Sequence record: OR805293.1
Strand: one strand, 5' to 3'
DNA length: 64,000 nucleotides
The notes under the pieces are model-generated. The model was given only the letters and a program-made list of their open reading frames with translations, was not told the DNA's origin and did no database searches. Position 1 is the stretch's first letter. Every line of letters begins with the position of its first letter. The position numbers were made by a program, and so were the translations under genes. Below, piece after piece: positions 25,763 through 62,346 of this stretch.

Positions 25763-25787
25763 AAGCCGTGCTTTTGCGCGGCTTTTT
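25763..25787 (+). terminator. Intrinsic terminator between the dsbA-like gene and polB
   Basis: aagccgtgc-tttt-gcgcggctt followed by Ts. Confidence 0.75.
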
Positions 25788-25803
25788 ATTTTGTAGGACA
25801 ATT

Positions 25804-28215
25804 ATGTACATCGATATTTTCGAAGATAAGAAAAATGAAATACTTCTAGTTGCAGAACGATCTGCAGGCAAACGAATATACAAACAATACCCTATAGATC
25901 ATACATATTACATATTAGATGCAAACGGACCGTATAAAGATATATTCGGTAATAATGCTAAAGCAATTAAGCCATCTAGCATAAATGAAAAAATGACTCA
26001 AATGAAAATGCTAGATTTTTCGCAAACGTGCGAAATAGACGTCAGGCCAGAATTTAGATGCCTGGAAGTAAACTATAAGAATGCACCTATGCCAGATTTA
26101 CATGTTGCATTCTTCGATATCGAGACCGCGTTTGATCAAAAACGCGGTTATGCCGACCCGGCCGATCCTTTTAATCCCATTATATCAATATCTGTATATT
26201 TGCAATGGATGCAGCAAATGGTTTGCTTAGCATTAGCACCGGAGACTATATTACCAGAAGATGCACAACGCATAGCATCAGAAGTAGGCGAAACAATTAT
26301 ATGTAAAAATGAAAAAGAAATGCTAAGTATGTTTATTGACTTAGTAGAAGATGCAGATATTTTATCAGGTTGGAACTCAGAACGTTTCGATATTCCTTAT
26401 ACTTTTAACAGAATTGTAAAATTATTAGGTAAGAATGAACTAAGAAAATTATGCCTTTGGAATCTTATGCCCAAGAAGCGCAATATTGAACAAGAAGGCG
26501 GCAGTAGTTTTGTTACATTCGAAACGTTTGGTAGAATACATTTAGATTATCTTCAATTATATAAAAAATATAATTACGAAGAACGTCATAGTTACTCGTT
26601 AGATTCTATTTCGGAAATTGAACTAGGTGAACGAAAAGTTCCATACAACGGAACATTAGACAAACTTTATAAATATGATTTTAAAAAGTTTTTAGAATAT
26701 AACATTCAAGATACTCGACTCCTAGATAAGTTAGATAGAAAATTAAAATATATAGATCTAGCTTCCACTATTGCACATAGTAATTGCATTCCTATCCCTA
26801 CAGTTATGGGTGCAGTAGCTACAACCGAACAAGCAATTATAATCGAAGCACATAATAACGGCATGGTAGTGCCATCTAGGCAACGTTTTAAAAATAATGA
26901 TACACTTAAAGCTGCAGGCGGCTGGGTAGCATATCCTAAAGTAGGACTGCATAGAGATATTGGCTCCAGTGACTTAAATTCTCTGTATCCTTCTGTGTTA
27001 AGGGCACTAAACATGAGCCCAGAAACTATTATAGGACAAATTCGGTTAACACTTACTAACCCTGCAATCGAAGAATGGTGTGCAAAAGGCGGAACAAAAC
27101 ATACATTTGCTGCATGGTGGAACGATAGGTTTACCACTTTAGAAATGGAATATGTGTTAAACAAAGACAGGGGTACTATATTAACGTTAGATATGGCAGA
27201 CGGGCGCTCGTTTGAACTGTCAGGTGCCGAAATATACGAATTAGTATTCAACAGTGGTCAGAATTGGCATATCAGTGCTAACGGAACTATATTTACACAA
27301 GACAGAGCAGGTGTAATTCCGTTACTACTTACAAGATGGTATGCAGAACGTAAAGGGATGCAGAAAATTGCATCAGATTATAATTCTTTAGATAAAGAAC
27401 ACCATAGCGACAAAACTGTATTTTTAGAAGATAAATCGGTATTAGATGGAATATGCGTAGGCGAAGTTGAATTAGCAGACCATTATAATATTAATGATGT
27501 ATATGTTGCAGCTACATTAAAAAATCTTGTCGAATCAAAAAATTGGCAAGAAGTAGCAATATATATGAAAAAGTATGGATTAGAAGTATCGTCTGACAAT
27601 TCAATTGTTATGTCAGATTCCCATATGCAAACCGAATATTACGAATATTGGGATAAAGCCCAGTTAGTTCGTAAAATTGGATTGAACAGCTTATATGGCG
27701 GACTACTTAACGAACATTCTAGATTCTACGATAAAAGACTAGGACAGAGTACTACACTCACAGGGCGCTGTATCACTAGACATATGGCATCTAAAACAAA
27801 CGAAATGTTCACTGGCATTTACGATCACGAAGGCGATTGTGTAATTTATGGCGATACAGATAGTGTAGATGGATCAACTATCCTAAATACTTCTCTAGGT
27901 AAAATAACTATAGAAGAGTTGTTTAATGTGTCTGACAAGCATGTAGTTCATGCAGAAAAAGAATTTGCTTCGAATGAAGATGTTATGGTAATGTCGTGGG
28001 ACAATTCTGCAAAACAACCATATATGGGGCATATAAACTATGTGTACCGCCACGAAGTAGAAAAAGAGTTATTCGAAATAGAAGACAACAACGGAAATAA
28101 AGTTATTGTAACCGAAGATCATTCTATTATGGTTATACGTAATGCAGAACTACTAGAAGTTAAGCCCGCAGAGTTAACAGACAGTGATATAATATTATCT
28201 ATTGTATATGAATAA
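25804..28215 (+). CDS. polB: Family B DNA polymerase, N-terminal part fused to split-intein N fragment
   Basis: Exo I FFDIET, Exo II GWNSERFDIPY, Exo III YNIQD, motif A SDLNSLYPS, motif B KIGLNSLYG, motif C truncated YGDTD followed by intein sequence; ATG 25804 has AGGA RBS. Confidence 0.95.
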   Translation: MYIDIFEDKKNEILLVAERSAGKRIYKQYPIDHTYYILDANGPYKDIFGNNAKAIKPSSINEKMTQMKMLDFSQTCEIDVRPEFRCLEVNYKNAPMPDLHVAFFDIETAFDQKRGYADPADPFNPIISISVYLQWMQQMVCLALAPETILPEDAQRIASEVGETIICKNEKEMLSMFIDLVEDADILSGWNSERFDIPYTFNRIVKLLGKNELRKLCLWNLMPKKRNIEQEGGSSFVTFETFGRIHLDYLQLYKKYNYEERHSYSLDSISEIELGERKVPYNGTLDKLYKYDFKKFLEYNIQDTRLLDKLDRKLKYIDLASTIAHSNCIPIPTVMGAVATTEQAIIIEAHNNGMVVPSRQRFKNNDTLKAAGGWVAYPKVGLHRDIGSSDLNSLYPSVLRALNMSPETIIGQIRLTLTNPAIEEWCAKGGTKHTFAAWWNDRFTTLEMEYVLNKDRGTILTLDMADGRSFELSGAEIYELVFNSGQNWHISANGTIFTQDRAGVIPLLLTRWYAERKGMQKIASDYNSLDKEHHSDKTVFLEDKSVLDGICVGEVELADHYNINDVYVAATLKNLVESKNWQEVAIYMKKYGLEVSSDNSIVMSDSHMQTEYYEYWDKAQLVRKIGLNSLYGGLLNEHSRFYDKRLGQSTTLTGRCITRHMASKTNEMFTGIYDHEGDCVIYGDTDSVDGSTILNTSLGKITIEELFNVSDKHVVHAEKEFASNEDVMVMSWDNSAKQPYMGHINYVYRHEVEKELFEIEDNNGNKVIVTEDHSIMVIRNAELLEVKPAELTDSDIILSIVYE
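27862..28215 (+). mobile_element. Split intein N fragment (117 aa, Ser1, no cysteines)
   Basis: SVDGSTIL (block A) directly after YGDTD; INYVYRH; VIVTEDHS (block B TxxH); VKPAEL; then stop. Confidence 0.93.
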
Positions 28216-29890
28216 AGAATATTATCAGTCATACGCAAAAGAATTAAAAAAGAATAATAAGAAAGAATACAATCGTATTCTTTCTTTGTATGAGCCCGTA
28301 TTTGATAAATGGGTTGCATTCAAGTATTATATAGAAGGAATATCGCCGCCTGTATGTAAAGAATGTGGTAATAGAATAACTGTTTCGGCAAAACAAGCAG
28401 AATATCACACAGAATGCAAATATAATAAACACAAGTATTCATTTGATAAATTTATAAAATGCATAGATGATGACCAATACATATATTGTGTGTGGAATGG
28501 ATATATTCCGACATCTGACAATATAACATACAGATGCACTAAACACGGCATAATTGTTCAAAAACTTAGTTCTAGACTAAAAGGTCACAAATGCCAAAAA
28601 TGTTCAGCTGAGCGTAAAGTAAGTCTAGATAACTTTAATAACTGGAAAACGCAGTGTTCTAAAATACATAATAATTTTTATGATTATTCTGTATCTACTG
28701 ATTTTACATTCTTAACAAAAGATGTATCTATTAAATGTCCAATACATGGAATATTTAAACAAAAAGCAAACGTCCATCAATCAGGTCACGGTTGTAAAAA
28801 ATGCTCGTTCGAAGCTATCGGTCATAAATTATCATATGACACCGATTCTTTTATAGAAAGAAGTAATAACGTTCATAATAATTTTTATGACTATACCAAA
28901 ACTATATACACTAACATTAGAGATAAAGTTGTTATAACATGTCCGATACACGGCGACTTTAACCAGATAGCATATTATCATACTGCCGGGCACGGTTGTC
29001 AGAAATGCGGTTTAGATAAAGTAGCAGAAACTACATATAGATCTAAGGCAGAAATAGAAATATTCGATTTAGTTAAATCTTATTGCTCAGATACAATTCA
29101 TTCATACAATAAATTTGGGTTCGAATTAGACATATATGTTCCTAGTAAAAATCTTGCAATAGAATATAATGGACTTTATTGGCATTCTTCTAAACACATA
29201 GAAACTGATCAAAAATATAAAACATACCATCTTGATAAAACCACTACATGTGAACAAAATAATATCCAATTATTACACATTTTCGACAACGAATGGCATA
29301 CTAAAAAAGATATATGGATCTCGGTAATAAAAAATAAACTAGGTTTATCTAATAAAATATATGCAAGAAAAACAGAAATTAAAGAAGTTAAGTTCGATGA
29401 TGCAAAGCAATTCGCCGAAACGAATCATTTGCAAGGTCATGCACAATTTCGGCATGCATACGGATTGTATTATTCGGATCAATTAGTTTCTTTATTAACA
29501 ATTGCAAAGCCCAGGTTTAATAAAAATGCAAACTGGGAAATAGTAAGATTTTGTAACCTAAATAACACAAGTGTAATAGGTGGGTTTTCTAAATTATTAA
29601 AGGTAGTTTCTTGTAATTTTACAGGCAAGATAGTATCATATGCAAATAGGCGCTGGTCCGTAGGAAACGTTTATGAAAAAAACGGATTTGCTAAAACTTC
29701 AATAATAGCTCCTGGATTTTATTATACTGACTTCAAAGATACATATAATAGGTTATCTTTCTCTAAAGACAAGGCAAAAGTTAAATTAAAAAATTATAAT
29801 AATTCAGTTAGCGTAGTAGAAAATATTTACGCAAACGGATATGGCAGGATTTGGGATTCAGGAAATATTGTTTATACAAAGGATTTATAA
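28208..29890 (+). CDS. Free-standing homing endonuclease (Zn-finger repeats, Vsr/EDxHD-like nuclease, Mom/GNAT-like C-terminal domain)
   Basis: CxxHG...H..GHGCxxC repeats; ELDIY...AIEYNGLYWHS; WEIVRF...IVSYANRRWS.G.VY..NGF; sits between the intein halves. Confidence 0.8.
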   Translation: MNKEYYQSYAKELKKNNKKEYNRILSLYEPVFDKWVAFKYYIEGISPPVCKECGNRITVSAKQAEYHTECKYNKHKYSFDKFIKCIDDDQYIYCVWNGYIPTSDNITYRCTKHGIIVQKLSSRLKGHKCQKCSAERKVSLDNFNNWKTQCSKIHNNFYDYSVSTDFTFLTKDVSIKCPIHGIFKQKANVHQSGHGCKKCSFEAIGHKLSYDTDSFIERSNNVHNNFYDYTKTIYTNIRDKVVITCPIHGDFNQIAYYHTAGHGCQKCGLDKVAETTYRSKAEIEIFDLVKSYCSDTIHSYNKFGFELDIYVPSKNLAIEYNGLYWHSSKHIETDQKYKTYHLDKTTTCEQNNIQLLHIFDNEWHTKKDIWISVIKNKLGLSNKIYARKTEIKEVKFDDAKQFAETNHLQGHAQFRHAYGLYYSDQLVSLLTIAKPRFNKNANWEIVRFCNLNNTSVIGGFSKLLKVVSCNFTGKIVSYANRRWSVGNVYEKNGFAKTSIIAPGFYYTDFKDTYNRLSFSKDKAKVKLKNYNNSVSVVENIYANGYGRIWDSGNIVYTKDL

Positions 29891-30145
29891 ATGCATAATC
29901 TAACAAAACACCTTTTAGGTGTATTTTCTGCAAAAACAGAAGACGAAGAATATAAAAGTGCAAAAAGAGCGCTAGAAGAATTAAACAAAAATATAAAAGA
30001 AAGAGATCCTAATAAATTTAATGTGTCTTTAGGAAAGGTATCTAAAGTAACTAATTTAGGAAAAAAGAAACAATATGTATACGATATAGGGATGAAAAAT
30101 CCCGATAATCCGTATTTCTTTGGAAATAATATATTAGTTCACAAT
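29891..30145 (+). mobile_element. Split intein C fragment (85 aa incl. ~44-aa N-terminal leader)
   Basis: YVYDIGM (block F) ... YFFGNNILVHN (block G, penultimate His, terminal Asn), followed by Ser+1. Confidence 0.93.
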
Positions 30146-31030
30146 TCTTGCTATTTTACTGCATGGCCTGCAGTAAAAGACCTTGTAGAATCTGGCGAAA
30201 TGGAATGGGATAAAGATACTGTCATTAAATTATACGACAACGTTTCGTCGCAAGTAAGTGATACATTTCCGGAATTTTTAAAACAAACATTTAATGTTCC
30301 ATACAAAAACTCAGAAGGTGTTATTAAGTCGGGTAGGGAAATTGTAGCTACTTCTGGTCTTTTTATTAAAAAGAAACGTTATGCTGCTATGATGTATGAT
30401 AAAGAAGGTACTAGATACGACGACGAAAACAGCCCAGGAAAAGTAAAAGCAATGGGTCTGGACCTACGTCGGTCAGATACGCCTAAATTTGTCCAAACAT
30501 TCCTTATGGAAATTCTAGTTATGGTGCTAACACATAAAACAGAAGATGAAGTAATAGAATATATTCGAGAATTTAAAAAAGAATTTAATAAAATGAAACC
30601 GTGGGAAAAGGGAATGCCAAAAGGCGTCAACGGTATCAGTACATATGAAGATAAATTAGAAGAACACATGAATAAAAAGTTAGCAGGAAGAGAGTCTAGA
30701 ATCACTGTCCCCGGTCACGTGTCTGCTGCGATGAATTGGAATAAACTAAAGCTTATCAATAAAGACCTACATACTCCTAAAATCTCAGATGGTCAAAAAT
30801 GTGTTGTTTGTTATTTAAAAGAAACCGCAGACAATCATTTTACTAGTATAGCATATCCTGTAGATGAATTGCACTTACCAGAATGGTTTACGTCTTTGCC
30901 ATTTGATGAAGATTTAATGAGAGAAAAAGTAGTAGATAACAAAGTTAAGAACCTTTTAGGTATTCTAAAATGGGATTTTAGTAAAACAGAAGAAGCTGCT
31001 GCACACTTTGATTCGCTGTTTGGTTGGTAA
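29891..31030 (+). CDS. polB: Split-intein C fragment fused to C-terminal part of family B DNA polymerase
   Basis: After HN: SCYF completes YGDTD|SCYF; KKKRYA and KAMGLDLRRSDTP thumb motifs. Confidence 0.95.
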   Translation: MHNLTKHLLGVFSAKTEDEEYKSAKRALEELNKNIKERDPNKFNVSLGKVSKVTNLGKKKQYVYDIGMKNPDNPYFFGNNILVHNSCYFTAWPAVKDLVESGEMEWDKDTVIKLYDNVSSQVSDTFPEFLKQTFNVPYKNSEGVIKSGREIVATSGLFIKKKRYAAMMYDKEGTRYDDENSPGKVKAMGLDLRRSDTPKFVQTFLMEILVMVLTHKTEDEVIEYIREFKKEFNKMKPWEKGMPKGVNGISTYEDKLEEHMNKKLAGRESRITVPGHVSAAMNWNKLKLINKDLHTPKISDGQKCVVCYLKETADNHFTSIAYPVDELHLPEWFTSLPFDEDLMREKVVDNKVKNLLGILKWDFSKTEEAAAHFDSLFGW

Positions 31031-31110: not shown

Positions 31111-31857
31111 ATGATTGTAGACAATTTAAAGGACGTAGTTCGTAACACTCACGGTTTAGGTTTTATAGATACTGTTAAAATTATCGGTTCTGTAAATGAA
31201 ACTAAATTAGAAGCTATGTCAACTAATAAAACTGTAGTTATGTACGGTTCTTTAAAAAAATCCATTCCGGGGTTAGACGATACTGTAGGTTTAAGCAGAA
31301 TGTCTGTACTGAGCGGAATGTTAAATTTCCCACCATATTCGGGAGATGATGCTGAAGTTTCTATTAAGAAACAAGAACGTAACGGTGAAGAAATTCCTGC
31401 AGAAATTGTATTTTCTTCTTCGACGGGTCACAAATCGTCGTACCGGTTTATGGCACGAGATACAGTAGATGAAGTGCTAAAAGTTCCGCCGTTTAGAGGA
31501 GTTGTGTGGGATATAGTTATTCAACCCACTAAGCAAGCGATGAAAGATCTTCAATATTTTAGTGCTGTATTGGGTTCTTATGAATCTAACTTTTTAGTTA
31601 AAGTAACAGACGGTGTTTTAGAATTCCACATAGGTACTGGTGCTACTAGCGACCGTACTGTTGTACCATTTGCAAAAGATGTCAAGAGCACATTACGCAA
31701 TAACTGGTCCTGGCCATTACCGGAAGTGTTAGCAATTCTAAAAAACGCAGATAGTGGAAAATGTACTATGTCTATTTCTAGTCAGGGTGCATTGATGATC
31801 GAACTCGACACTGGGCTAATAGAAGTTCAATATATTCTTCCTGCAAAAAGTGCATAA
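31111..31857 (+). CDS. Putative DNA polymerase sliding clamp (T4 gp45-like)
   Basis: 248 aa alpha/beta protein adjacent to polB, C-terminal YILPA; size and context fit a clamp. Confidence 0.55.
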   Translation: MIVDNLKDVVRNTHGLGFIDTVKIIGSVNETKLEAMSTNKTVVMYGSLKKSIPGLDDTVGLSRMSVLSGMLNFPPYSGDDAEVSIKKQERNGEEIPAEIVFSSSTGHKSSYRFMARDTVDEVLKVPPFRGVVWDIVIQPTKQAMKDLQYFSAVLGSYESNFLVKVTDGVLEFHIGTGATSDRTVVPFAKDVKSTLRNNWSWPLPEVLAILKNADSGKCTMSISSQGALMIELDTGLIEVQYILPAKSA

Positions 31858-31860
31858 ATA

Positions 31861-32121
31861 ATGATCTTACCTGCTCGTAAATTAGTTAAATTGCAATACT
31901 ATATTGTACAGGAATCTTACAATTCTATAGGTAGACCAATAACTACAGTTACTCTTGTATACAGAAAATATATATTTTTTACAAAGAAAGAAAAAATTAT
32001 ATTCGAGCGTATTAAGAAAACAGACAATTTGTATTATAAACAAGAATCCGAAAAAGAGTTGTGTGAACAACTAAGTGTATGGGCAAAAAGAACATTAAAA
32101 ATATATGATATAGGGCAATAA
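31861..32121 (+). CDS. Hypothetical protein
   Basis: 86-aa ORF in operon position. Confidence 0.55.
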   Translation: MILPARKLVKLQYYIVQESYNSIGRPITTVTLVYRKYIFFTKKEKIIFERIKKTDNLYYKQESEKELCEQLSVWAKRTLKIYDIGQ

Positions 32122-32132
32122 TTGCCCTATAT
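32108..32132 (+). terminator. Hairpin / terminator
   Basis: atatagggcaat-a-attgccctatat followed by Ts. Confidence 0.6.
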
Positions 32133-32193
32133 TTTTCATTTATAAATGAATTAACCTAAATACATATGCACTAAAGAATAATTAAGGAATATA

Positions 32194-33816
32194 ATGAAAA
32201 ATTTATCAAACAGTCAAAAAGATTATGCGATCTATTTGCCTGCAATTAGTGGGTTTTACACAAAACAATTAGACAGTTCTATTAACGATCCGTCTACAAG
32301 AAAAATACCTAGCTTTCCTAATGGATATAATACTCTTAATTTTTTAGATCCATCTAGCGATACATTCTTTTACGGGTATGGGTTATATTCTGCAGGCCAT
32401 GCAGAACTGTCTTTATCTAGAACTGATGCAAAAGAATGGATGATCCAAGCCAGGGACAAAACACAAACAACAGTTATTGCAGACTCGGGTGGTTTCCAGG
32501 TAGCTACCGGTGTAATTAAATTAAACTGGGATGATTTTAAAGGAGCTAGCGGAGATAAAATAAGAAATGAAATTTTAAAATGGTGTGAACATACCGCCGA
32601 CTGGTCAATGACACTAGATGTTCCTGCGTTTGCTGCTACTCCTCCGTACAGTTCAAAAACCGGTCTTAATAAATTTGAAGATACATTAGATTATTCTCTT
32701 CATAATTTACATTATTACATGAAGAACAGAACTCCTGGCGCAACTAAATTCCTTAGTGTATTATCGGGATCAGATGTAGATACATCTAAAATTTGGTACG
32801 ACAACGTAAAAGCATTTAGTGACCCAGCTAAAGTAGTAGAAATGGGATATCCGGCTAGTCATACACTCGAAGGGTATGCATTTGCTGGTATAAACATGAG
32901 AAATATGTATTGTGCTCTTTCTCGATTCTTAGATTTAATAGATGATAATATTATTTCAGATAAAAACTGGATACACTTTCTCGGACTAGGCAGGACTGAT
33001 TGGGCTTGTTTCTTAACATCTATTCAGCGAAATATAAGAAAACATTATAATCCCAATATTAACATAAGTTTTGACGCAGCTTCTCCGTTTGTTTCTGTGG
33101 CATACGGTCTTGCATATAACTATAATTATTTTAATCCCAAACGGTGGGGATATAATATGGATTCTGCTCCGGACAGCAGAGAGTTTAGTGATAAGGATAT
33201 TCCTATGCCGTTTATGAGTCCTATTATGGAAAAATTATCATTAAAAGACATATGTCCATATCACAATGGTTATGGTATAATAAATGGTGTTAAAAATGCA
33301 AACTTTACAAAAGAAGATGTAGAAACTGCTCTCAAAGAAGGAAAAGATGCAGAATACGTGCCACCGAGTGCAAATAAAAATGGTAAAGTAGGTAAAACCA
33401 GTTGGGATTCACTTAGTTACTTATTAATAATGAATCACAATGTTTACAATCATATAGCTGCAATCCAAGAATCTAATAGATTAGTTGATATAGAACGGTT
33501 GCGAGTTAAAGTAGATTACCGAGATTGGACTAGAGATAAAAAGAAAGGTACTATAGAAGTAAGTAATCACGTCCCTAGTTCGATTTTATATTTTGATCAT
33601 TTTGTAGAAGTATTGCTAGATCCGAGTACTCCTAATAAGCGACAATTATTAGAAGATTATAGACCTATGCTAGACAGCATTAGTTTCGGCAATTATAACT
33701 CAAACTCATTTAACAGTCTTTTTGATGTAGATGCTACTGCAATCGAAGATGAAAATAAATTTGCAGACATAAACGACGAAAAACTAACCGAATTAGAACA
33801 AGGATTAGACAATTAA
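32194..33816 (+). CDS. tRNA-guanine transglycosylase (TGT)-fold enzyme, probable DpdA-like DNA base-exchange protein
   Basis: ADSGGFQ, MTLDVP, HFLG, SFDAASP and HN motifs align with the TGT catalytic barrel; neighbours are preQ pathway genes. Confidence 0.75.
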   Translation: MKNLSNSQKDYAIYLPAISGFYTKQLDSSINDPSTRKIPSFPNGYNTLNFLDPSSDTFFYGYGLYSAGHAELSLSRTDAKEWMIQARDKTQTTVIADSGGFQVATGVIKLNWDDFKGASGDKIRNEILKWCEHTADWSMTLDVPAFAATPPYSSKTGLNKFEDTLDYSLHNLHYYMKNRTPGATKFLSVLSGSDVDTSKIWYDNVKAFSDPAKVVEMGYPASHTLEGYAFAGINMRNMYCALSRFLDLIDDNIISDKNWIHFLGLGRTDWACFLTSIQRNIRKHYNPNINISFDAASPFVSVAYGLAYNYNYFNPKRWGYNMDSAPDSREFSDKDIPMPFMSPIMEKLSLKDICPYHNGYGIINGVKNANFTKEDVETALKEGKDAEYVPPSANKNGKVGKTSWDSLSYLLIMNHNVYNHIAAIQESNRLVDIERLRVKVDYRDWTRDKKKGTIEVSNHVPSSILYFDHFVEVLLDPSTPNKRQLLEDYRPMLDSISFGNYNSNSFNSLFDVDATAIEDENKFADINDEKLTELEQGLDN

Positions 33817-34877
33817 TGAAAGTTATAATAATCCCAATCGAATCAATAGAAACTCGGTATACGTCAGAATGGAATACGTTTCTTAAACCGCAACTAGAAA
33901 AGTATATAAACGAATCCGGTCTCGATGCAGAAATAGTTCAAATTGATGTAGATTATGTTGACGAAGGCACCTCTGCGGGTGCCTTCCTTAACTTTGCAAA
34001 TACAAACATATTCAAATGCAATCAATTCATTAAATTAGCAAGTATAATAGAAACTTTAAACGATAACGATGTTGTTCTCTATACAGACGCATGGAATCCC
34101 ACAGTAGTTCAACTAAATTACATGCGATCGTTAATGAATAAAAAATTTAAAATAATGGGGTTGTGGCACGCCGGTTCGTATGATCCGCATGATTTTTTAG
34201 GAAGGCACTTTGATAAAAATTGGTCATATGAATTTGAAAGATCGTTATATAATATATATGATGTGAATTTCTATGCAACTAATTTTAGTAAAGATCTCAT
34301 GATAGATAACCTTTTTGGTAAAACAGCTAACATAAACAGACACGATATAGTAGGTTGGCCAATGGAATATTTAGTTGACCAACTTACACCTTCTACTAAC
34401 AAGACAGATACTGTATTATTTCCTCATCGAATTTCTCCGGAAAAACAACCAAATATATTTAAAAAATTAAGATCATTACTTCCTAACTACGAGTTTGTTT
34501 TTGCACAAGAAACTAAATTATCAAAGGCAGAATACCATACACTTCTTAAACGTTCTAAAATTGTCTTTTCGGCTTCGTTGCAGGAAACATTGGGTATAGG
34601 TTTCTACGAAGGTGCATTAGTCGGTGCAATTCCATTATTGCCTGACCGATTGTCTTATAAAGAAATGACAGAAAATGTAAAAAACAGAAATTTGTATGTA
34701 TATCCAAATGAATGGACTATTTCGGAAAATCTGGCAGACCTAAAAAATTTAGTTACCCTAATAGATTATACTATGCGTAATTATAATTTTATAGTAGAAG
34801 AAATGAAACTTAATTTACTGCCCGAATTAAACAAATATTATAACGGAACAGAGTTGTATAAAAGAATTTTAAAATAA
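33816..34877 (+). CDS. GT-B (GT4-like) glycosyltransferase
   Basis: HRISPEKQP and VFSASLQETLGIGFYEG..VGAIPLLPD (ExxGxxxxE motif); TAATG overlap with the TGT-like gene. Confidence 0.8.
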   Translation: MKVIIIPIESIETRYTSEWNTFLKPQLEKYINESGLDAEIVQIDVDYVDEGTSAGAFLNFANTNIFKCNQFIKLASIIETLNDNDVVLYTDAWNPTVVQLNYMRSLMNKKFKIMGLWHAGSYDPHDFLGRHFDKNWSYEFERSLYNIYDVNFYATNFSKDLMIDNLFGKTANINRHDIVGWPMEYLVDQLTPSTNKTDTVLFPHRISPEKQPNIFKKLRSLLPNYEFVFAQETKLSKAEYHTLLKRSKIVFSASLQETLGIGFYEGALVGAIPLLPDRLSYKEMTENVKNRNLYVYPNEWTISENLADLKNLVTLIDYTMRNYNFIVEEMKLNLLPELNKYYNGTELYKRILK

Positions 34878-34961
34878 TTTCCATTTAATATTCTGCATAC
34901 AATTTACATTTTAATACGAAAACATTATAATATTACAAAATTAAAAATAAGGATTATTTTT

Positions 34962-35339
34962 ATGGGAATTAAACGATGGATCGAAGTTCCTTTTCAGAAA
35001 GAAGGAATTCACATGTACCCGGGTGCAGATAGTAACCCTGCACTAGCTACAAATGATTGGAAAGATGTATCTTTTTTAGGATATCCTCATTTTCATTATT
35101 TTTATTTTACTGTTAAAATTGAAGTTTTTCATAATGAACGAGATATCGAATTTATTCAATTTAGACGGTTCTTAGAAAGACTGTATAGTGAATCTCTGCT
35201 AAAACTAGATGGTAAATCTTGTGAAACAATGGCAGAAGAATTATATGAACAAATTAACATTGTATATCCTAACAGGGACGTTGTGATTACAGTGGCAGAA
35301 GACAATATTAATAAAGCTGTTTTAGAATTTTTCAAATAA
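34962..35339 (+). CDS. QueD-like T-fold protein (possible DpdL-type paralogue)
   Basis: EGIH, LGYPHFHYF (HxH metal motif), SCE and VAED motifs; 125 aa. Confidence 0.65.
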   Translation: MGIKRWIEVPFQKEGIHMYPGADSNPALATNDWKDVSFLGYPHFHYFYFTVKIEVFHNERDIEFIQFRRFLERLYSESLLKLDGKSCETMAEELYEQINIVYPNRDVVITVAEDNINKAVLEFFK

Positions 35340-35353
35340 GCAAGGATGCTATT

Positions 35354-35614
35354 ATGTATAATAAACAACTGTCGGGAATATATACTACTACAACGATAAA
35401 CTCTATGCCAGCTAGCTACTCCGGATTAACGGATCTAGGCATGTATGATACAGAACTTTCAGTATTGAGGAAAAAGATAGAACAGATAGAAAAAATGTTG
35501 TGCATGTTAGAAGTAGATAAATTACTTTCAGAAAAATATCCTGCATTAAAATCTGCATATGACGAATACGAAGTCATATTATCTATCATAAACGGTACGG
35601 AGAAAAAAGAGTAA
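35354..35614 (+). CDS. Hypothetical protein
   Basis: 86 aa with coiled-coil IEQIEKMLCML...EKYPALKSAY. Confidence 0.6.
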   Translation: MYNKQLSGIYTTTTINSMPASYSGLTDLGMYDTELSVLRKKIEQIEKMLCMLEVDKLLSEKYPALKSAYDEYEVILSIINGTEKKE

Positions 35615-36133
35615 ATGGCAATGCGTGTCATTATTACTGGTTGTAACGGTTATGTTGGTAAAACAGTAAGCAAATACTATTATACATTAGGATATAATGT
35701 AGTGGGATTTGATTTAATTAATTCAAAAAATAGTTACATAACTAATTTTTATCAAACTAGCTATGCATCTAGTATCGCAGAAGATATAATACTCGAGTCT
35801 GATGCAGACACGCTTATTCATTGTGCTGTAGAAAAAAGCAATACATTACAACAACATTTCTACCACAATAGTATTCAATTTATAAACTTATTATCAGTAT
35901 TAAAAAATACTTCTATAAAAGAAATAATAGTATTTAGAAATAAAAGTGCAGAAAATAATGATGCCTTTTTAAAACTCTCTAATAACACTAATAAAGACTA
36001 TTTAGAAGAATTTTCTAAATCGACAGGAATTAATTCAAAAATATATAATTTGTTAGATAAGAATAATGAACAACACATTATAGAATTAGTACAACCGTAT
36101 TTAGAATTAAGTAAACACTTTTATATATTTTAA
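35615..36133 (+). CDS. Truncated/degenerate NAD-dependent epimerase-dehydratase (possible pseudo-enzyme)
   Basis: ITGCNGYVG Rossmann motif and IHCA, but only 172 aa and no recognisable YxxxK catalytic motif. Confidence 0.6.
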   Translation: MAMRVIITGCNGYVGKTVSKYYYTLGYNVVGFDLINSKNSYITNFYQTSYASSIAEDIILESDADTLIHCAVEKSNTLQQHFYHNSIQFINLLSVLKNTSIKEIIVFRNKSAENNDAFLKLSNNTNKDYLEEFSKSTGINSKIYNLLDKNNEQHIIELVQPYLELSKHFYIF

Positions 36134-36144
36134 GGAGATATTAT

Positions 36145-36579
36145 ATGTACGATAAAAATTTTGTATCAATGGATCAAATGCCAGTTATTGTCAGTGACTT
36201 GGTTAGTGATATAGACGAAGCAGGAATTTCTCCTAAAGTTATTATTGCTATTAGCAAAGGTGGACTAATTCCTGCCACTATGATTAGCTATTATTATGAT
36301 TGCCCCATTGTAACATACGATCCGGTAGAAGATTGTTTTAGTACAAATAATGACATAAGTTCTGAATGCATTATCGTAGATGATGTTATCGATACAGGCA
36401 ATACTGTAAATTCTGTTATTTCTTTGTTAGAAGACGAATTCTTTTTTACGAAAGAAGACATTAGTAAAATTAGAGTAGCATCAATATTTGCAACAAGAAA
36501 TAATACAATTGTAGATTTTTATCATGATGAAATAAGTTACCATGATTCGGTAAGTTTTGAATTTAAACAATTTATTTAA
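36145..36579 (+). CDS. Type I (purine) phosphoribosyltransferase
   Basis: IAISKGGLIPATMISY and the PRPP-binding loop IIVDDVIDTGNT. Confidence 0.85.
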   Translation: MYDKNFVSMDQMPVIVSDLVSDIDEAGISPKVIIAISKGGLIPATMISYYYDCPIVTYDPVEDCFSTNNDISSECIIVDDVIDTGNTVNSVISLLEDEFFFTKEDISKIRVASIFATRNNTIVDFYHDEISYHDSVSFEFKQFI

Positions 36580-36649
36580 TATAAAGTTATTCTTTACTTT
36601 TAGTATGATTGCGTTTATAATGTATATTATAAAATAAAGCGGATTATGT

Positions 36650-37522
36650 ATGAAACACAGATATACTGAAAAGTTTTTCTCAGTCCAGGGAGAAAGCCTA
36701 CATACCGGAAAACTATGCACTTGGCTTAGATTTTTCGGATGTTCGTTACAATGTAGGGGCTTTGGACAAAAAGAACCTGGAAATCCCGAAACATGGGTAG
36801 AACAACGACCGGATTTAATAGATGTAACAAACATTACAGATTATAAACAATTACCGACTCCTAAGTATGGATGTGATTCAGACTATTCTGTATTTGCTAA
36901 ATTTAAACATCTTGCAACAGAAGTCGATCCTGTTGTAGTTGCAAATGAAATAAAACAATTAATTCCTAGTAAAACATTTGGTAAAAAAATAGGTCATGTA
37001 TTTACGGGCGGAGAACCGTTAGTAAACCAAGAATCTATAGTAGATATAGTAAATTATTGGATAGATACTAATGATTATCCTGCATGGATAGGAATAGAAA
37101 CAAATACAACTAGACCGTTAGAAAAATGCTTAATCGATTTAGTTAACAGATGTAAATCGATTGGTGTGCAATTTTATTTTTCTATGTCACCCAAACTACT
37201 TCATGTAGCAGGTGAACAACCCAAACGAGCTATCCATATAAATTTAATGAAGGAATATATAGATATTGCACCGGATAGCTATCTAAAATTTGTAGTAAAT
37301 GAAGATCAGCGATCGTGGGATCAAGCAAAAAGTATAGTAGACACATTAAATGCTGACGGGTATTTACCAGATGTGTGGGTTATGCCAGTTGGAGGCATTT
37401 ATTCCCAACAAACAGACCCAGTAATTGGAAGACTTGCAGATAAAGCTATCTTCGAATACGAATGGAATGTTAGTTTACGTGTTCACGTATTAACCTGGGG
37501 TGACGATCAACTAGGTAGGTAA
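36650..37522 (+). CDS. queE: 7-carboxy-7-deazaguanine synthase (radical SAM)
   Basis: EKFFSVQGE, RFFGCSLQC...(insertion)...GCDSDYS, FTGGEP, IETN, SPKL, C-terminal RVHVLTW. Confidence 0.85.
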   Translation: MKHRYTEKFFSVQGESLHTGKLCTWLRFFGCSLQCRGFGQKEPGNPETWVEQRPDLIDVTNITDYKQLPTPKYGCDSDYSVFAKFKHLATEVDPVVVANEIKQLIPSKTFGKKIGHVFTGGEPLVNQESIVDIVNYWIDTNDYPAWIGIETNTTRPLEKCLIDLVNRCKSIGVQFYFSMSPKLLHVAGEQPKRAIHINLMKEYIDIAPDSYLKFVVNEDQRSWDQAKSIVDTLNADGYLPDVWVMPVGGIYSQQTDPVIGRLADKAIFEYEWNVSLRVHVLTWGDDQLGR

Positions 37523-37526
37523 AACC

Positions 37527-37946
37527 ATGAACCGTATTATCCTTTCTGTAGTGTTTAGTTTAATATCGTCGTATGCAGTATGCGGAGAAAATAAATCCTA
37601 TATAAATCCGCATCTTCATGGAAAATGCGTCGGGATGGTTACTAAACTGTCTGAATATGCAAATACCGAAGTATTAACTTTAAAATTGTATAATATAGGT
37701 CAGGTACTTCATGCATACGGCAAATACACTGCACTAAAATCGAATAATGCAGATACAGCACTGTATGATCAAGGATTAGTTGACGGAAGAGAAACAGTTT
37801 CTAAAAATATAGAAAATAACAATTTTAATGTTTTAGTAAAATATTATGAAGATAATTGTCTAGAAATATTTTACAAATCTGCAGACTGGTTATATCATAA
37901 TAACATACACCAGTTCAATAAATTAACGGATATTTTTAATAAATGA
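37527..37946 (+). CDS. Hypothetical exported protein
   Basis: N-terminal signal-peptide-like MNRIILSVVFSLISSYAVCG. Confidence 0.6.
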   Translation: MNRIILSVVFSLISSYAVCGENKSYINPHLHGKCVGMVTKLSEYANTEVLTLKLYNIGQVLHAYGKYTALKSNNADTALYDQGLVDGRETVSKNIENNNFNVLVKYYEDNCLEIFYKSADWLYHNNIHQFNKLTDIFNK

Positions 37947-38554
37947 AAAAAAGATTATTTCCATTTTGGTTATGGCCATATAGCTGGGGATTACCTGCTA
38001 AACAGAAAGCTATTGCAAAAGCAGAGTATTATCTCGAAGGAGAAGAATTAGATAGGGAATTAGTAGCACTATCGAATACAACAAGCAAAGCCAAAGAAAT
38101 TGAATTGTTACATATTGATTTTAAATATGGTAAAATAACAGAATACGAATACGATGTTGCTTTAGCTAAAACTCAATACGATCCGGGTCTGGCTTTAGAC
38201 TTAAAATTAGCTGATATAGATTTAAAGCATCATAAAATAAATGAAAGGGAACATAGCAAACAAATTGCTACCTTAAGAAAGTTACCTTGGGTAGATATAA
38301 TAAAGATAGGCTTGTCTTCTTCTGATATTTCGACAGGAGAAATGGAATTAGACTGGAATGAATATTTTATAGAAGAATTGCACGAATACGGATATGTAGG
38401 TAGGACTGACGAAGAAGTAGTAAATTTATGGTTATCTACTTTATGTAAAAATATCGCATTAGACGAATTCGGAGGAATGGGATCTGTAGACGATCTTTCA
38501 GAAGATAATGACAAAATAGATAGCAAAGAAAACTATAGAAGGGAAGTTAAGTAA
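37943..38554 (+). CDS. Conserved hypothetical protein
   Basis: 203-aa ORF, overlapping start/stop with neighbours. Confidence 0.7.
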   Translation: MKKRLFPFWLWPYSWGLPAKQKAIAKAEYYLEGEELDRELVALSNTTSKAKEIELLHIDFKYGKITEYEYDVALAKTQYDPGLALDLKLADIDLKHHKINEREHSKQIATLRKLPWVDIIKIGLSSSDISTGEMELDWNEYFIEELHEYGYVGRTDEEVVNLWLSTLCKNIALDEFGGMGSVDDLSEDNDKIDSKENYRREVK

Positions 38555-39540
38555 TGTCTAAAACTTATATTTTAATCGATACATTTAACATGTTTCATAG
38601 AGCAAAACATGTAATCAGGTCCTCCTCGTTAGATGAAAAAGTAGGCATGTGTCTTCATGTAATGTTTAACAGTATACGCAAAGTATACAGAGACCATTCT
38701 GCAGATCATGCTGTGTTTTGCATAGAAGGCAAATCTTGGCGGAAGGACTTTTATAAAGAATATAAGTTCAACCGAACAGCAGCTAGAATGGCAAGAACAG
38801 AAGCTGAAATCGAAGAAGATGCTGCTTTAATGGAAGCATATAACGATTTAATTACGTTCATTAATGATAAAACAAATTCTAGCGTACTACATCACCATAA
38901 AGCAGAAGCAGATGATATGATAGCTACTTGGATTCAAAATAATCCAAATGATAATCATATTATTGTTAGTTCAGACAGCGATTTTTTCCAGCTATTAGCA
39001 CCTAACGTTAAAATATATAATGGAATTACAGAACAACTAATCACATTAGAAGGTTTCTTTGATAATAAAGGCAAACCTGTAATTGATAATAAAACAAAGA
39101 AACCAAAAGTGGCTCCTGATCCTAAATGGTTATTATTTGAAAAATGCATTAGGGGAGATAAATCTGATTTTATTTTTGCGGCGTATCCAGGTGCAAGAGA
39201 AACTAGTTCTAAAAATAAAGTAGGCATGCGTGAAGTATTTGCCGATATGGATAATAAAGGTTACGCATGGAATAATTTTATGTTGACAAAAATTACAGAT
39301 TCTGCTGGTAATGAATTTGTTGTTCACGATAAGTACGAATTTAACAAAACACTAATTGACTTAACTTGTCAGCCAGATGATCTAAAAACAGAATTTAAAA
39401 CAGTCGCAGATGTGGCTCGTAATAAACCGCCCGTATCTAACGTAGGCATCCATTTTTTAAAATTCTGTAATAGATGGGCACTAGAGCAAATCTCTAAATA
39501 TCCGGACGAATTTGCAAAACTTCTTAATGCTAAACCATAA
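38554..39540 (+). CDS. rnh: T4 RNase H / FEN-1-like 5'-3' nuclease
   Basis: ILIDTFN, SWRKDFY..YK, EADDMIA, SSDSDFFQL, GDKSD motifs. Confidence 0.88.
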   Translation: MSKTYILIDTFNMFHRAKHVIRSSSLDEKVGMCLHVMFNSIRKVYRDHSADHAVFCIEGKSWRKDFYKEYKFNRTAARMARTEAEIEEDAALMEAYNDLITFINDKTNSSVLHHHKAEADDMIATWIQNNPNDNHIIVSSDSDFFQLLAPNVKIYNGITEQLITLEGFFDNKGKPVIDNKTKKPKVAPDPKWLLFEKCIRGDKSDFIFAAYPGARETSSKNKVGMREVFADMDNKGYAWNNFMLTKITDSAGNEFVVHDKYEFNKTLIDLTCQPDDLKTEFKTVADVARNKPPVSNVGIHFLKFCNRWALEQISKYPDEFAKLLNAKP

Positions 39541-61831: not shown

Positions 61832-62346
61832 CAATGGATAGAAAAGAAGTAATTTATTTTATAGGAACAGAAGTCGAACATACTCCAGTATACGGTGAAA
61901 AAACACTTTTTGTTGCTGGTCCCCAAGCCGGTGACGAAGTAGTAAGTAATGCACTGAAACATAACTGTAAACATATATATTTCGGTGCTAACCAAAGTTT
62001 CCCTCTACACAAAATAGATATAACAGAAGTAATTAAATGGAAACAAATGATACTGCATTGCTTAAATAAAGGATTTTGGTGTACTTTAGATTTTGATATA
62101 TGCAATTCTTCTGCAATTTTAGAAATGGATTTATCTAAGTATGATAAATTTATTCCTATTATAAGTGCAAAAATACCAAATATATCCGAATACAATAAAA
62201 ACACTATATTAAAGATAGATGATATAGGTTTTGATGAAACTAACGAAGGAGTATGGTGTCATAAGTTAAACGATTTAAAAGATAATACCGTACATACTAG
62301 CTGGGACAAATATACAGGAGATATTTCAATTGACGAAAAAAATTAA
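61822..62346 (+). CDS. Conserved phage hypothetical protein
   Basis: FIGTEVEHTP...HIYFGANQSF...KIDD..F..TN.GVWCH. Confidence 0.75.
   Translation: MELTMDRKEVIYFIGTEVEHTPVYGEKTLFVAGPQAGDEVVSNALKHNCKHIYFGANQSFPLHKIDITEVIKWKQMILHCLNKGFWCTLDFDICNSSAILEMDLSKYDKFIPIISAKIPNISEYNKNTILKIDDIGFDETNEGVWCHKLNDLKDNTVHTSWDKYTGDISIDEKN

Follow-up and report, generated by a model that had tools for sequence, protein, structure and literature searches.

We describe a gene module that very probably directs a 7-deazaguanine modification of phage DNA, found in a 64,000-nucleotide stretch of sequence record OR805293.1 (the window, whose base 1 is base 62001 of its source, Pseudomonas phage Deifobo). The module occupies positions 32194-37522 and consists of seven plus-strand open reading frames (ORFs) with short gaps or none between them. 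Its gene content marks it as the core of a 7-deazaguanine DNA-modification system of the DpdL type, and it is set apart from known 7-deazaguanine systems by a long, unclassified DpdA-like enzyme and by conserved glycosyltransferase (GT) and phosphoribosyltransferase (PRTase) partners. The interval is 100% identical to Deifobo, and its identity to ten further records, all from PA5oct-like jumbo phages (Wroclawvirus, Arenbergviridae), is 98.5-99.8%. We used the PA5oct genome (NC_071039.1) as cover for the phage outside the window. In that RefSeq record, where locus tags fall as the coordinate rises, the module runs from gp168 to gp162, and every product is a 'hypothetical protein' except gp162 (QueE-like).

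An initial annotation had read the interval as a 7-deazaguanine DNA-modification cluster just downstream of genes for a family B DNA polymerase (polB) and a sliding clamp. It described a gene of tRNA-guanine transglycosylase (TGT) fold overlapping a GT-B glycosyltransferase gene by TAATG, with an epimerase remnant, a purine PRTase and QueE downstream. This picture holds up: the four TGT motifs were found and the predicted fold matches TGTs, sequence and structural model agree on the overlap with a GT-B gene, Pfam and PHROG profiles match the downstream genes, and the ORFs with the PAC2 and PA5oct annotations place the cluster behind polB and the clamp. The assignment to DNA modification gains from the presence of a TGT/DpdA-like protein and QueE in a replication module and from the modified guanine of PA5oct DNA, which is known from the literature; the folds, motifs, gene content and gene-set conservation are from this analysis.

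A 2025 preprint (PMC12191111) reports that PA5oct DNA resists restriction enzymes that act at G sites, from which a modified G in GA and/or GG was inferred; the base was not identified. That work points to gp162 (QueE) and gp230 (QueD) and includes no mass spectrometry on PA5oct. END nucleases also restricted the phage, and one of them acts on G-modified phages only; these nucleases sense modified DNA through an inactivated EndoIII domain. PA5oct itself has a gene annotated 'Endonuclease III-like protein' (gp201, NC_071039.1 185298-185633), a curious coincidence with the END nucleases. The PA5oct genome paper, which drew on nanopore (ONT) data, does not mention the pathway, and we found no paper on glycosylated deazaguanine in DNA, on a follow-up of DpdL, or on mass spectrometry of DNA from the PA5oct group.

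The first gene of the module encodes a 540-residue protein in which DSGGFQ, LD, HFLG and FD are all present. Across 35 homologues, 47-80% identical to the query, D97, S98, G100, Q102, D142, H261, L263, G264 and D294 are invariant, and motif and fold together suggest that these residues are equivalent to the catalytic residues of Tgt. Its AlphaFold2 (AF2) model has a pLDDT of 88 and a pTM of 0.88. Ranks 1-7 of a Foldseek search of the PDB were all TGT, QTRT1 or QTRT2 (E 5e-5 to 3e-3; target-normalised TM about 0.5), comprising bacterial Tgt and murine and human QTRT1/QTRT2, and unrelated TIM barrels trailed at much weaker scores. In BFVD its fold was matched by phage proteins that carry the names tRNA-guanine transglycosylase or queuine tRNA-ribosyltransferase, by one from Vibrio phage nt-1, and by others from Cellulophaga phage phiST and a Sulfolobales virus. 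The family is large, with at least 1605 proteins, typically about 50% identical, many of them on contigs of 200-390 kb and none with a Pfam domain.

Searches with the 540-residue protein gave zero matches in Pfam, PHROG, NCBIfam and PDB sequences, either alone or (for the PDB) as a 35-sequence profile, and it was placed by fold comparison alone. In an hhalign comparison with Acidovorax phage ACP17 gp123 (83.7%) all four motifs stand opposite those of that protein. BLASTP groups the Deifobo protein with those of a marine relative (L006) and Sinorhizobium phage Phosso, apart from a group of ACP17, Xanthomonas phage X1 (whose protein is annotated queuine tRNA-ribosyltransferase) and phage pf16, with a cross-link at E 0.002. 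The initial annotation had suggested placing the protein among DpdA1-4 and Tgt; a weak link to the ACP17/X1/pf16 type emerged, and no named subfamily gave a clean fit. We file it as a putative deep and unclassified branch of the TGT/DpdA superfamily and assign it to no named DpdA subfamily. Its gene lies in replication modules, beside polB and the clamp here, beside primase and DnaB in Phosso, and with polymerase and primase in ACP17 and X1.

The T-fold gene that had been called 'QueD-like' does encode a QueD paralogue, but specifically DpdL. Its family alignment matches phiST CGPG_00067 in hhalign at 99.5% (E 1.4e-22, 109 columns, 35% identity), tblastn recovers it in phiST-group phages (33%), ACP17 (47%) and others, and 987 relatives were found in a search of 1.84 billion representatives. 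Among 32 members H17, L39, H43, H45, E63, E88 and E113 are invariant and F47 nearly so, giving the motif LxxxHxHxF; Deifobo has F between the two motif histidines, where R is usual in the family. The family profile weakly matches PDB 2dj6, listed as hypothetical protein PH0634 and presumably a PTPS homologue, and 6 of the 32 members weakly match Pfam PTPS. CGPG_00067 was named DpdL by Cui, Hutinet et al. (NAR 2023; PMC10516641), who described a QueD paralogue with CxxxHGH changed to LxxxHRHxF. They proposed that it may decarboxylate 7-carboxy-7-deazaguanine (CDG) to 7-deazaguanine, and found by mass spectrometry that 7-deazaguanine replaces G in phiST DNA, as plain 2'-deoxy-7-deazaguanine (dDG), whose [M+H]+ is 267.109. 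Their paper mentions neither a glycosyltransferase nor a PRTase. Because the T-fold gene is DpdL, the base to be expected is 7-deazaguanine or a derivative, not preQ0 or CDG, and we consider it moderately probable that the base is of this kind.

Local tblastn with comparator proteins detected no FolE, canonical QueD or QueC in the window, as the initial annotation had stated, and the search of the remaining genome that it proposed recovered FolE and two QueD proteins in PA5oct but no QueC. FolE (gp231) and QueD proteins gp230 and gp226 (Pfam PTPS, 2e-30 and 1.6e-21) are encoded about 58 kb upstream of the module and outside the window. They lie at NC_071039.1 168449-171971, about 22 kb before the window start, among ClpX-, ClpS-, Hsp20- and FtsH-like genes. 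QueC was absent from the whole PA5oct genome in tblastn with pf16 QueC as the only QueC query, and gave 0 matches in 157 related IMG/VR loci. The combination of FolE and QueD with no QueC is the published DpdL signature. FolE and gp230 carry the note 'ESI-MS/MS', meaning that they were detected by proteomics, and a PA5oct-type phage holds three T-fold paralogues, DpdL and two canonical QueD. In X1 (L180, 6332-6865) a 'PAPS reductase family' protein is encoded beside FolE. PAPS reductases and QueC share the ATP-pyrophosphatase fold, and this protein is possibly QueC-like, in which case X1 would not fit the 'no QueC' rule so simply.

QueE closes the module and is recognized by phrog_2076 ('QueE-like', 6.6e-49); NCBIfam models match its N-terminus only, below their cut-offs (best TIGR03963, 41.6 bits versus 260). 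The residues Q13 and E15 (QGE motif), C31, C35, C75-D76 and T119-G-G-x-P123 (TGGEP) are invariant across eight phage QueE proteins, including those of phiST, ACP17, nt-1 and pf16. A loop of about 39 residues between the second and third cysteines is shared with pf16, nt-1, Ahp1 and two related loci (L005, L006), and is absent in ACP17 and phiST. Its identity to the QueE of pf16, which is encoded together with FolE, QueD and QueC, is 60%.

The stop codon of the TGT-like gene overlaps the GT start in the sequence TAATG. One-base overlaps of this kind are ordinary in phage operons and not significant alone; it is the conserved gene association, not the overlap, that exceeds chance. The AF2 model of the GT (pLDDT 90.7) has a GT-B/GT4 fold, and a fold search of the PDB gave 92 matches with E no higher than 1e-3, headed by BshA (1e-10), PglA, MshA and GlgM (1e-10 to 1e-8). 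The T4 glucosyltransferases AGT and BGT were not among the 50 PDB fold matches listed, all of GT4 type, nor were they in a profile search of PDB sequences. Residues E257 and E265 (EX7E) and the basic H204, R205 and K210, which would bind the diphosphate of the nucleotide sugar, are invariant in 34 homologues, and EX7E is kept in the GTs of ACP17, Phosso, L006, X1 and Burkholderia phage BCSR5. Conservation is unusually high in the N-terminal (acceptor) domain, where aromatic residues abound. Pfam Glycos_transf_1 scores below threshold (18.8 bits versus a cut-off of 26.4). From these residues the GT looks catalytically competent. The family counts at least 8000 homologues, mostly marine, and the GT protein P0235 of the marine ENA contigs L006 and L007 appears in 197 indexed blocks of the collection.

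The coupling of the GT to the cluster, which had been proposed from the overlap, is borne out by a conserved neighbourhood. ACP17 has the order DpdA-like, GT (overlapping), DpdL, QueE, and X1 has GT, then the DpdA-like gene one base later, DpdL and QueE. In BCSR5 the GT adjoins a 446-residue ORF that we take to be DpdA-like, its match to the TGT-like family profile being weak (hhalign 22%). The GT thus stands beside a DpdA-like gene in four lineages (PA5oct, ACP17, X1 and BCSR5) and in both gene orders. Phosso has DpdL followed by an overlapping GT beside polB and the clamp, with the TGT-like gene elsewhere; this 469-kb phage also has a gene annotated 'glycosylase' (L019, 6017-6550) between the sliding clamp and the DpdL/GT pair.

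Environmental sequences tell the same story from two directions. Among 80 IMG/VR loci chosen by DpdL similarity alone, a GT was present in 76 and a TGT-like gene in 70; among 77 chosen by GT similarity alone, DpdL occurred in all 72 and the TGT-like gene in all 64 of those whose flanks suffice, and QueC in none. About 150 IMG/VR loci combine GT, DpdL and TGT-like gene, usually with the PRTase, and share a synteny of polB, clamp, TGT-like gene, DpdL, GT, FolE, QueE and exonuclease. Both DpdL and the GT have at least 591 IMG/VR matches, and protein clusters of the set number in the thousands. In the marine relatives L006 and L007, genes for several 2-oxoglutarate-Fe(II) (2OG-Fe(II)) oxygenases and one of the HIT family are interspersed in the module, with FolE directly before QueE; the oxygenases could tailor the base further.

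The PRTase matches Pfam Pribosyltran (43.3 bits versus a cut-off of 26.3) with an intact loop for phosphoribosyl pyrophosphate (PRPP), VDDVIDTG. Its best NCBIfam match, below threshold, is xanthine PRTase, and its best PDB sequence matches are the purine PRTases GpT-2 (2.9e-6), 1vdm and XPRT; by these similarities it is of purine type. Of the 63 related IMG/VR loci whose flanks were long enough, an iterated family model found a PRTase in 54, which supports the earlier view that it belongs to the set, and an epimerase in 34. The Deifobo epimerase, an extended short-chain dehydrogenase/reductase (SDR), matches Pfam in its N-terminal part only (5.9e-7); it has no C-terminal domain and has not kept the catalytic tyrosine of SDRs. 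It was truncated once, with no internal stop or frameshift, and full-length homologues of 312-324 residues stand at the same place in L003 and L005. Judged by these sequences, 'remnant' is a fair description of the gene in the PA5oct group.

From these folds, motifs and neighbourhoods we infer the enzymatic steps of a probable route, together with the identity of its base and the acceptor of its GT. GTP would be converted to CDG by FolE and QueD, encoded outside the window, and by the QueE of the module. Without QueC there would be no passage to preQ0, and DpdL would decarboxylate CDG to 7-deazaguanine. The TGT-fold protein would swap guanine for 7-deazaguanine in newly made phage DNA, rendering it refractory to restriction. 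The purine PRTase would most likely return the excised guanine to GMP and on to GTP, the pathway's own precursor. The GT, on the same message as the transglycosylase and in the same substrate stream, would most likely decorate the deazaguanine further or be needed for its installation, and the epimerase may tailor the sugar donor in relatives, being degenerate in this phage. Up to and including insertion of a 7-deazaguanine-type base, we regard the route as a whole as probable, with some reserve.

Whether the final DNA base carries a sugar is a more speculative matter, to which we lend tentative and limited credence. In the loci and phages compared here the GT was seen only alongside DpdL, never with QueC-type pathways. 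Because it accompanies DpdL, the step that would free C7, a sugar at the vacated C7 is conceivable; N2 is the alternative site. Huimycin is glycosylated at N2, and natural products of this kind make a sugar on the base plausible by analogy, although we know of no sugar-bearing purine-type base described in DNA. The most specific form of the proposal is that the GT attaches a sugar to DpdL-made 7-deazaguanine, either as the free base before insertion or in DNA, with the PRTase closing a guanine-to-GTP loop. We think that combination somewhat unlikely as stated.

Several observations weigh against the route or its sugar step. What counts most against a sugar is that 7-deazaguanine has no hydroxyl for O-glycosylation of the GT4 type. 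The phages phiST, Ahp1 and RHph_I1_18 have DpdL but no GT within 10 kb, and pf16, with QueC and without DpdL, has no GT match at all; because the GT is absent near some DpdL phages and from QueC-bearing pf16, it appears to be an optional add-on to the DpdL branch. The IMG/VR counts are not independent events because the roughly 150 loci form one syntenic clade, and the four cultured lineages with differing gene orders are stronger evidence than these counts. For the TGT-like protein, neither Pfam TGT PF01702 nor DUF6610 (DpdA4) matches it or any of the 35 aligned homologues (E up to 1). Its sequence links are weak to the ACP17/X1/pf16 type of DpdA and very weak to DpdA3, with hhalign values of 28.6% for phiST DpdA3 and 26.7% for pf16 gp80. 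It also lacks the CxCxxC zinc motif of Tgt, and its family has no invariant cysteine. The enzymes of the module are assigned from sequence and models, and DpdL decarboxylation is itself a proposal. The restriction pattern in PMC12191111 suggests partial modification limited to GA/GG motifs, unlike the complete replacement in phiST. Finally, E. coli given dpdA and dpdL from either ACP17 or phiST made no dDG (PMC10516641); the link of the GT to DpdA and DpdL offers an explanation for this failed two-gene reconstitution.

The lack of an O-acceptor would be no difficulty if the final base were plain dDG and the GT a helper, making a transient glycosylated intermediate or serving as a required partner of the transglycosylase or DpdL. 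Plain dDG is what phiST DNA contains, and for a stoichiometric partner of DpdA such close coupling in translation would be apt. However, the EX7E and diphosphate-binding residues are invariant across the GT family, which argues for catalysis; phiST, Ahp1 and RHph_I1_18 do without a GT, so that it is not needed for the basic pathway; and full-length NDP-sugar epimerase genes accompany it in about half of the relatives. We consider a plain base fairly unlikely on this balance. A nucleotide-level route, in which the PRTase joins CDG or 7-deazaguanine to PRPP, the product becomes a dNTP for the phage polymerase and the TGT-fold protein has another role, strikes us as improbable. It would account for the conservation of the PRTase in the module (54 of 63 loci), it resembles the QueC-less tubercidin clusters, where a PRTase and a decarboxylase act on CDG, and a ribonucleotide reductase, a dNMP kinase and MazG-like enzymes are encoded by the phage itself. 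Yet the TGT-fold protein is equally conserved, DNA is the substrate of all DpdA enzymes that have been tested, a DpdA is encoded by each of the deazaguanine phages examined, and the best matches of the PRTase are ordinary 6-oxopurine salvage enzymes. Motif-limited modification also suits a sequence-reading transglycosylase better than incorporation by a polymerase.

Two further explanations would detach part of the module from DNA. The GT, T-fold proteins, FolE and SDR could make a glycosylated pterin or another small molecule and be linked to DNA-modification genes by position only: pterin-glycoside synthesis calls for just such a set of FolE, PTPS-like T-fold protein, SDR and GT-B enzyme, and tetrahydrobiopterin glucosyltransferase is among the GT fold matches. 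That match, at rank 50, nevertheless does not stand out from dozens of other GT4 enzymes, the SDR belongs with the extended NDP-sugar enzymes and not with the sepiapterin-reductase type, and the GT stays beside the DpdA-like gene in four lineages whatever the gene order, all of which makes this account very improbable. Alternatively, the TGT-fold protein could modify phage or host tRNA in the manner of canonical Tgt. Its best solved-structure matches are tRNA enzymes, and the phage tRNA set (Deifobo record 138757-142956, outside the window) includes tRNA-Asn, one of the four queuosine-family tRNAs. But the DNA of PA5oct is itself modified at G (PMC12191111), and several lineages carry the gene in a replication module, together with DpdL, a protein linked to dDG in DNA. 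Among viral folds the nearest to the protein are DpdA-type proteins of phages, and it lacks the zinc motif of tRNA Tgt; we find a tRNA function hardly credible. Modification of DNA with a 7-deazaguanine-type base remains our preferred reading of the module.

The surroundings of the module are those of a replication region, and its features are collected in the table. polB is split once by a Hef-like homing-endonuclease ORF, whereas L003, L005 and L006 have a single unbroken polB; several more Hef-like homing endonucleases are annotated across the PA5oct genome. The clamp ORF is 37-46% identical at the same position in those three relatives, and a clamp was found in 63 of the 80 DpdL-chosen and 62 of the 77 GT-chosen IMG/VR loci. 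The exonuclease keeps its position in L005 and L006. Within the module, gp165 has no match in Pfam, PHROG or NCBIfam, and a weak 40%-identical stretch appears in L003 only. Beyond QueE, the 203-residue ORF (gp160) matches phrog_13349 'virion structural protein' (2.3e-38) and has homologues in L005 and L006. The 139-residue ORF (37527-37946) has no significant match in Pfam, PHROG or NCBIfam; weak NCBIfam hints of a HisE-type pyrophosphatase (E about 0.07-0.09) found no confirmation on further search, and we leave the ORF unassigned.

A hairpin upstream of the TGT-like gene is a possible upstream boundary of the transcription unit; the terminator search was a consensus scan only, with 7 sites against 3.2 +/- 1.9 in shuffles. 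Sigma-70-like sites showed no excess (52 versus 46 +/- 8 in shuffles). Near-consensus matches of this type lie in both intergenic gaps, at 34903-34931 (11/12, before DpdL) and 36593-36621 (10/12, before QueE). A 117-residue antisense ORF on the minus strand (36481-36834), across the PRTase/QueE junction, looks like a chance ORF in AT-rich sequence. Elsewhere in Deifobo, a repeat_region annotated 'CRISPR' (OR805293.1 158039-158336) lies within a run of very small ORFs.

Table. Features of the module and its flanks, in window coordinates.
Feature	Position	Strand	PA5oct gene	Basis and remarks
Family B DNA polymerase	25768..31030	+		Two ORFs; PAC2 and PA5oct annotation; context, outside module
PCNA-like sliding clamp	31111..31857	+		PAC2 annotation 'proliferating cell nuclear antigen'; context
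Terminator-like hairpin	32107..32133	+		12-bp stem, then T-rich tail; between an 86-aa ORF upstream and the TGT-like gene
TGT-like/DpdA-like protein, 540 aa	32194..33816	+	gp168	Motifs, predicted fold
GT-B/GT4-like (retaining type) glycosyltransferase, 353 aa	33816..34877	+	gp167	Predicted fold, EX7E
Putative DpdL, T-fold QueD/PTPS paralogue, 125 aa	34962..35339	+	gp166	hhalign, motif; phrog_17812
86-aa ORF	35354..35614	+	gp165	Without family match
Truncated extended SDR (NDP-sugar epimerase/dehydratase-like), 172 aa	35615..36133	+	gp164	Pfam Epimerase
Type I purine PRTase (predicted), 144 aa	36145..36579	+	gp163	Pfam Pribosyltran
Phage-type QueE, radical SAM, 290 aa	36650..37522	+	gp162	phrog_2076
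Two ORFs, 139 aa and 203 aa	37527..38554	+	gp161, gp160	Between QueE and exonuclease; putative module members at most
5'-3' exonuclease/RNase H	38554..39540	+		Pfam 5_3_exonuc_N, 7.9e-22; downstream end of syntenic block; context

PA5oct-like jumbo phages are therapy candidates against Pseudomonas aeruginosa, and the chemistry of their DNA decides which restriction, CRISPR and modification-dependent defences are escaped or triggered; END nucleases already sense it. Naming gp163-gp168, with a DpdA-like protein, a GT, DpdL and a PRTase among them, provides a concrete prediction for the modified G of PA5oct. As the DpdA-like/DpdL/GT/PRTase set is abundant in marine and freshwater viromes, its product base is likely widespread. 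Should a sugar be attached, glycosylated 7-deazaguanine would be present in the DNA of PA5oct-like phages and of a very large clade of environmental phages with large genomes. This would constitute a new class of DNA hypermodification and a new enzyme activity for nucleic-acid chemistry.

Among known systems, the dDG system of phiST (PMC10516641) shares FolE, QueD, QueE and DpdL, the lack of QueC, and a TGT-superfamily transglycosylase near replication genes. It differs in that its transglycosylase is the 259-residue DpdA3, barely alignable with the 540-residue protein described here, and the Deifobo module adds a GT4 glycosyltransferase, a purine PRTase and an epimerase remnant, with FolE and QueD 58 kb away. 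Replacement of G is complete in phiST, whereas modification in PA5oct is apparently partial. ACP17, X1 and BCSR5 share the four-gene core of DpdA-like protein, GT, DpdL and QueE, including the overlap of the GT with the DpdA-like gene in ACP17, where gp123 is a TGT-motif protein in a FolE/QueD/QueE operon. Their GTs are 24-38% (X1, ACP17) and 21% (BCSR5) identical to that of Deifobo, and their DpdL proteins 37-47%. In contrast, their DpdA-like proteins are shorter (424-446 residues) and form a separate group with pf16 gp80, their annotations note no PRTase, and their DNA has no published mass spectrometry.

The alpha- and beta-glucosyltransferases of phage T4 act on 5-hydroxymethylcytosine in DNA. 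By analogy, the Deifobo GT may likewise be a GT-B enzyme that adds a sugar to a non-canonical base after replication as a second layer of protection, although it is of GT4 type, would act on a purine analogue without a hydroxymethyl handle, and has DNA only as a putative acceptor. Closer in chemistry are the actinomycete pathways to huimycin/dapiramicin and tubercidin. According to a 2026 preprint on deazapurine natural products, the huimycin GT-B glycosyltransferase uses UDP-GlcNAc on a free 7-deazapurine base, and CDG is the substrate of a PRTase and a decarboxylase in the tubercidin clusters, which lack QueC. Although these clusters contain no TGT or DpdA and their products are secreted small molecules, they offer functional precedents for a GT and a PRTase that work on free deazapurines.

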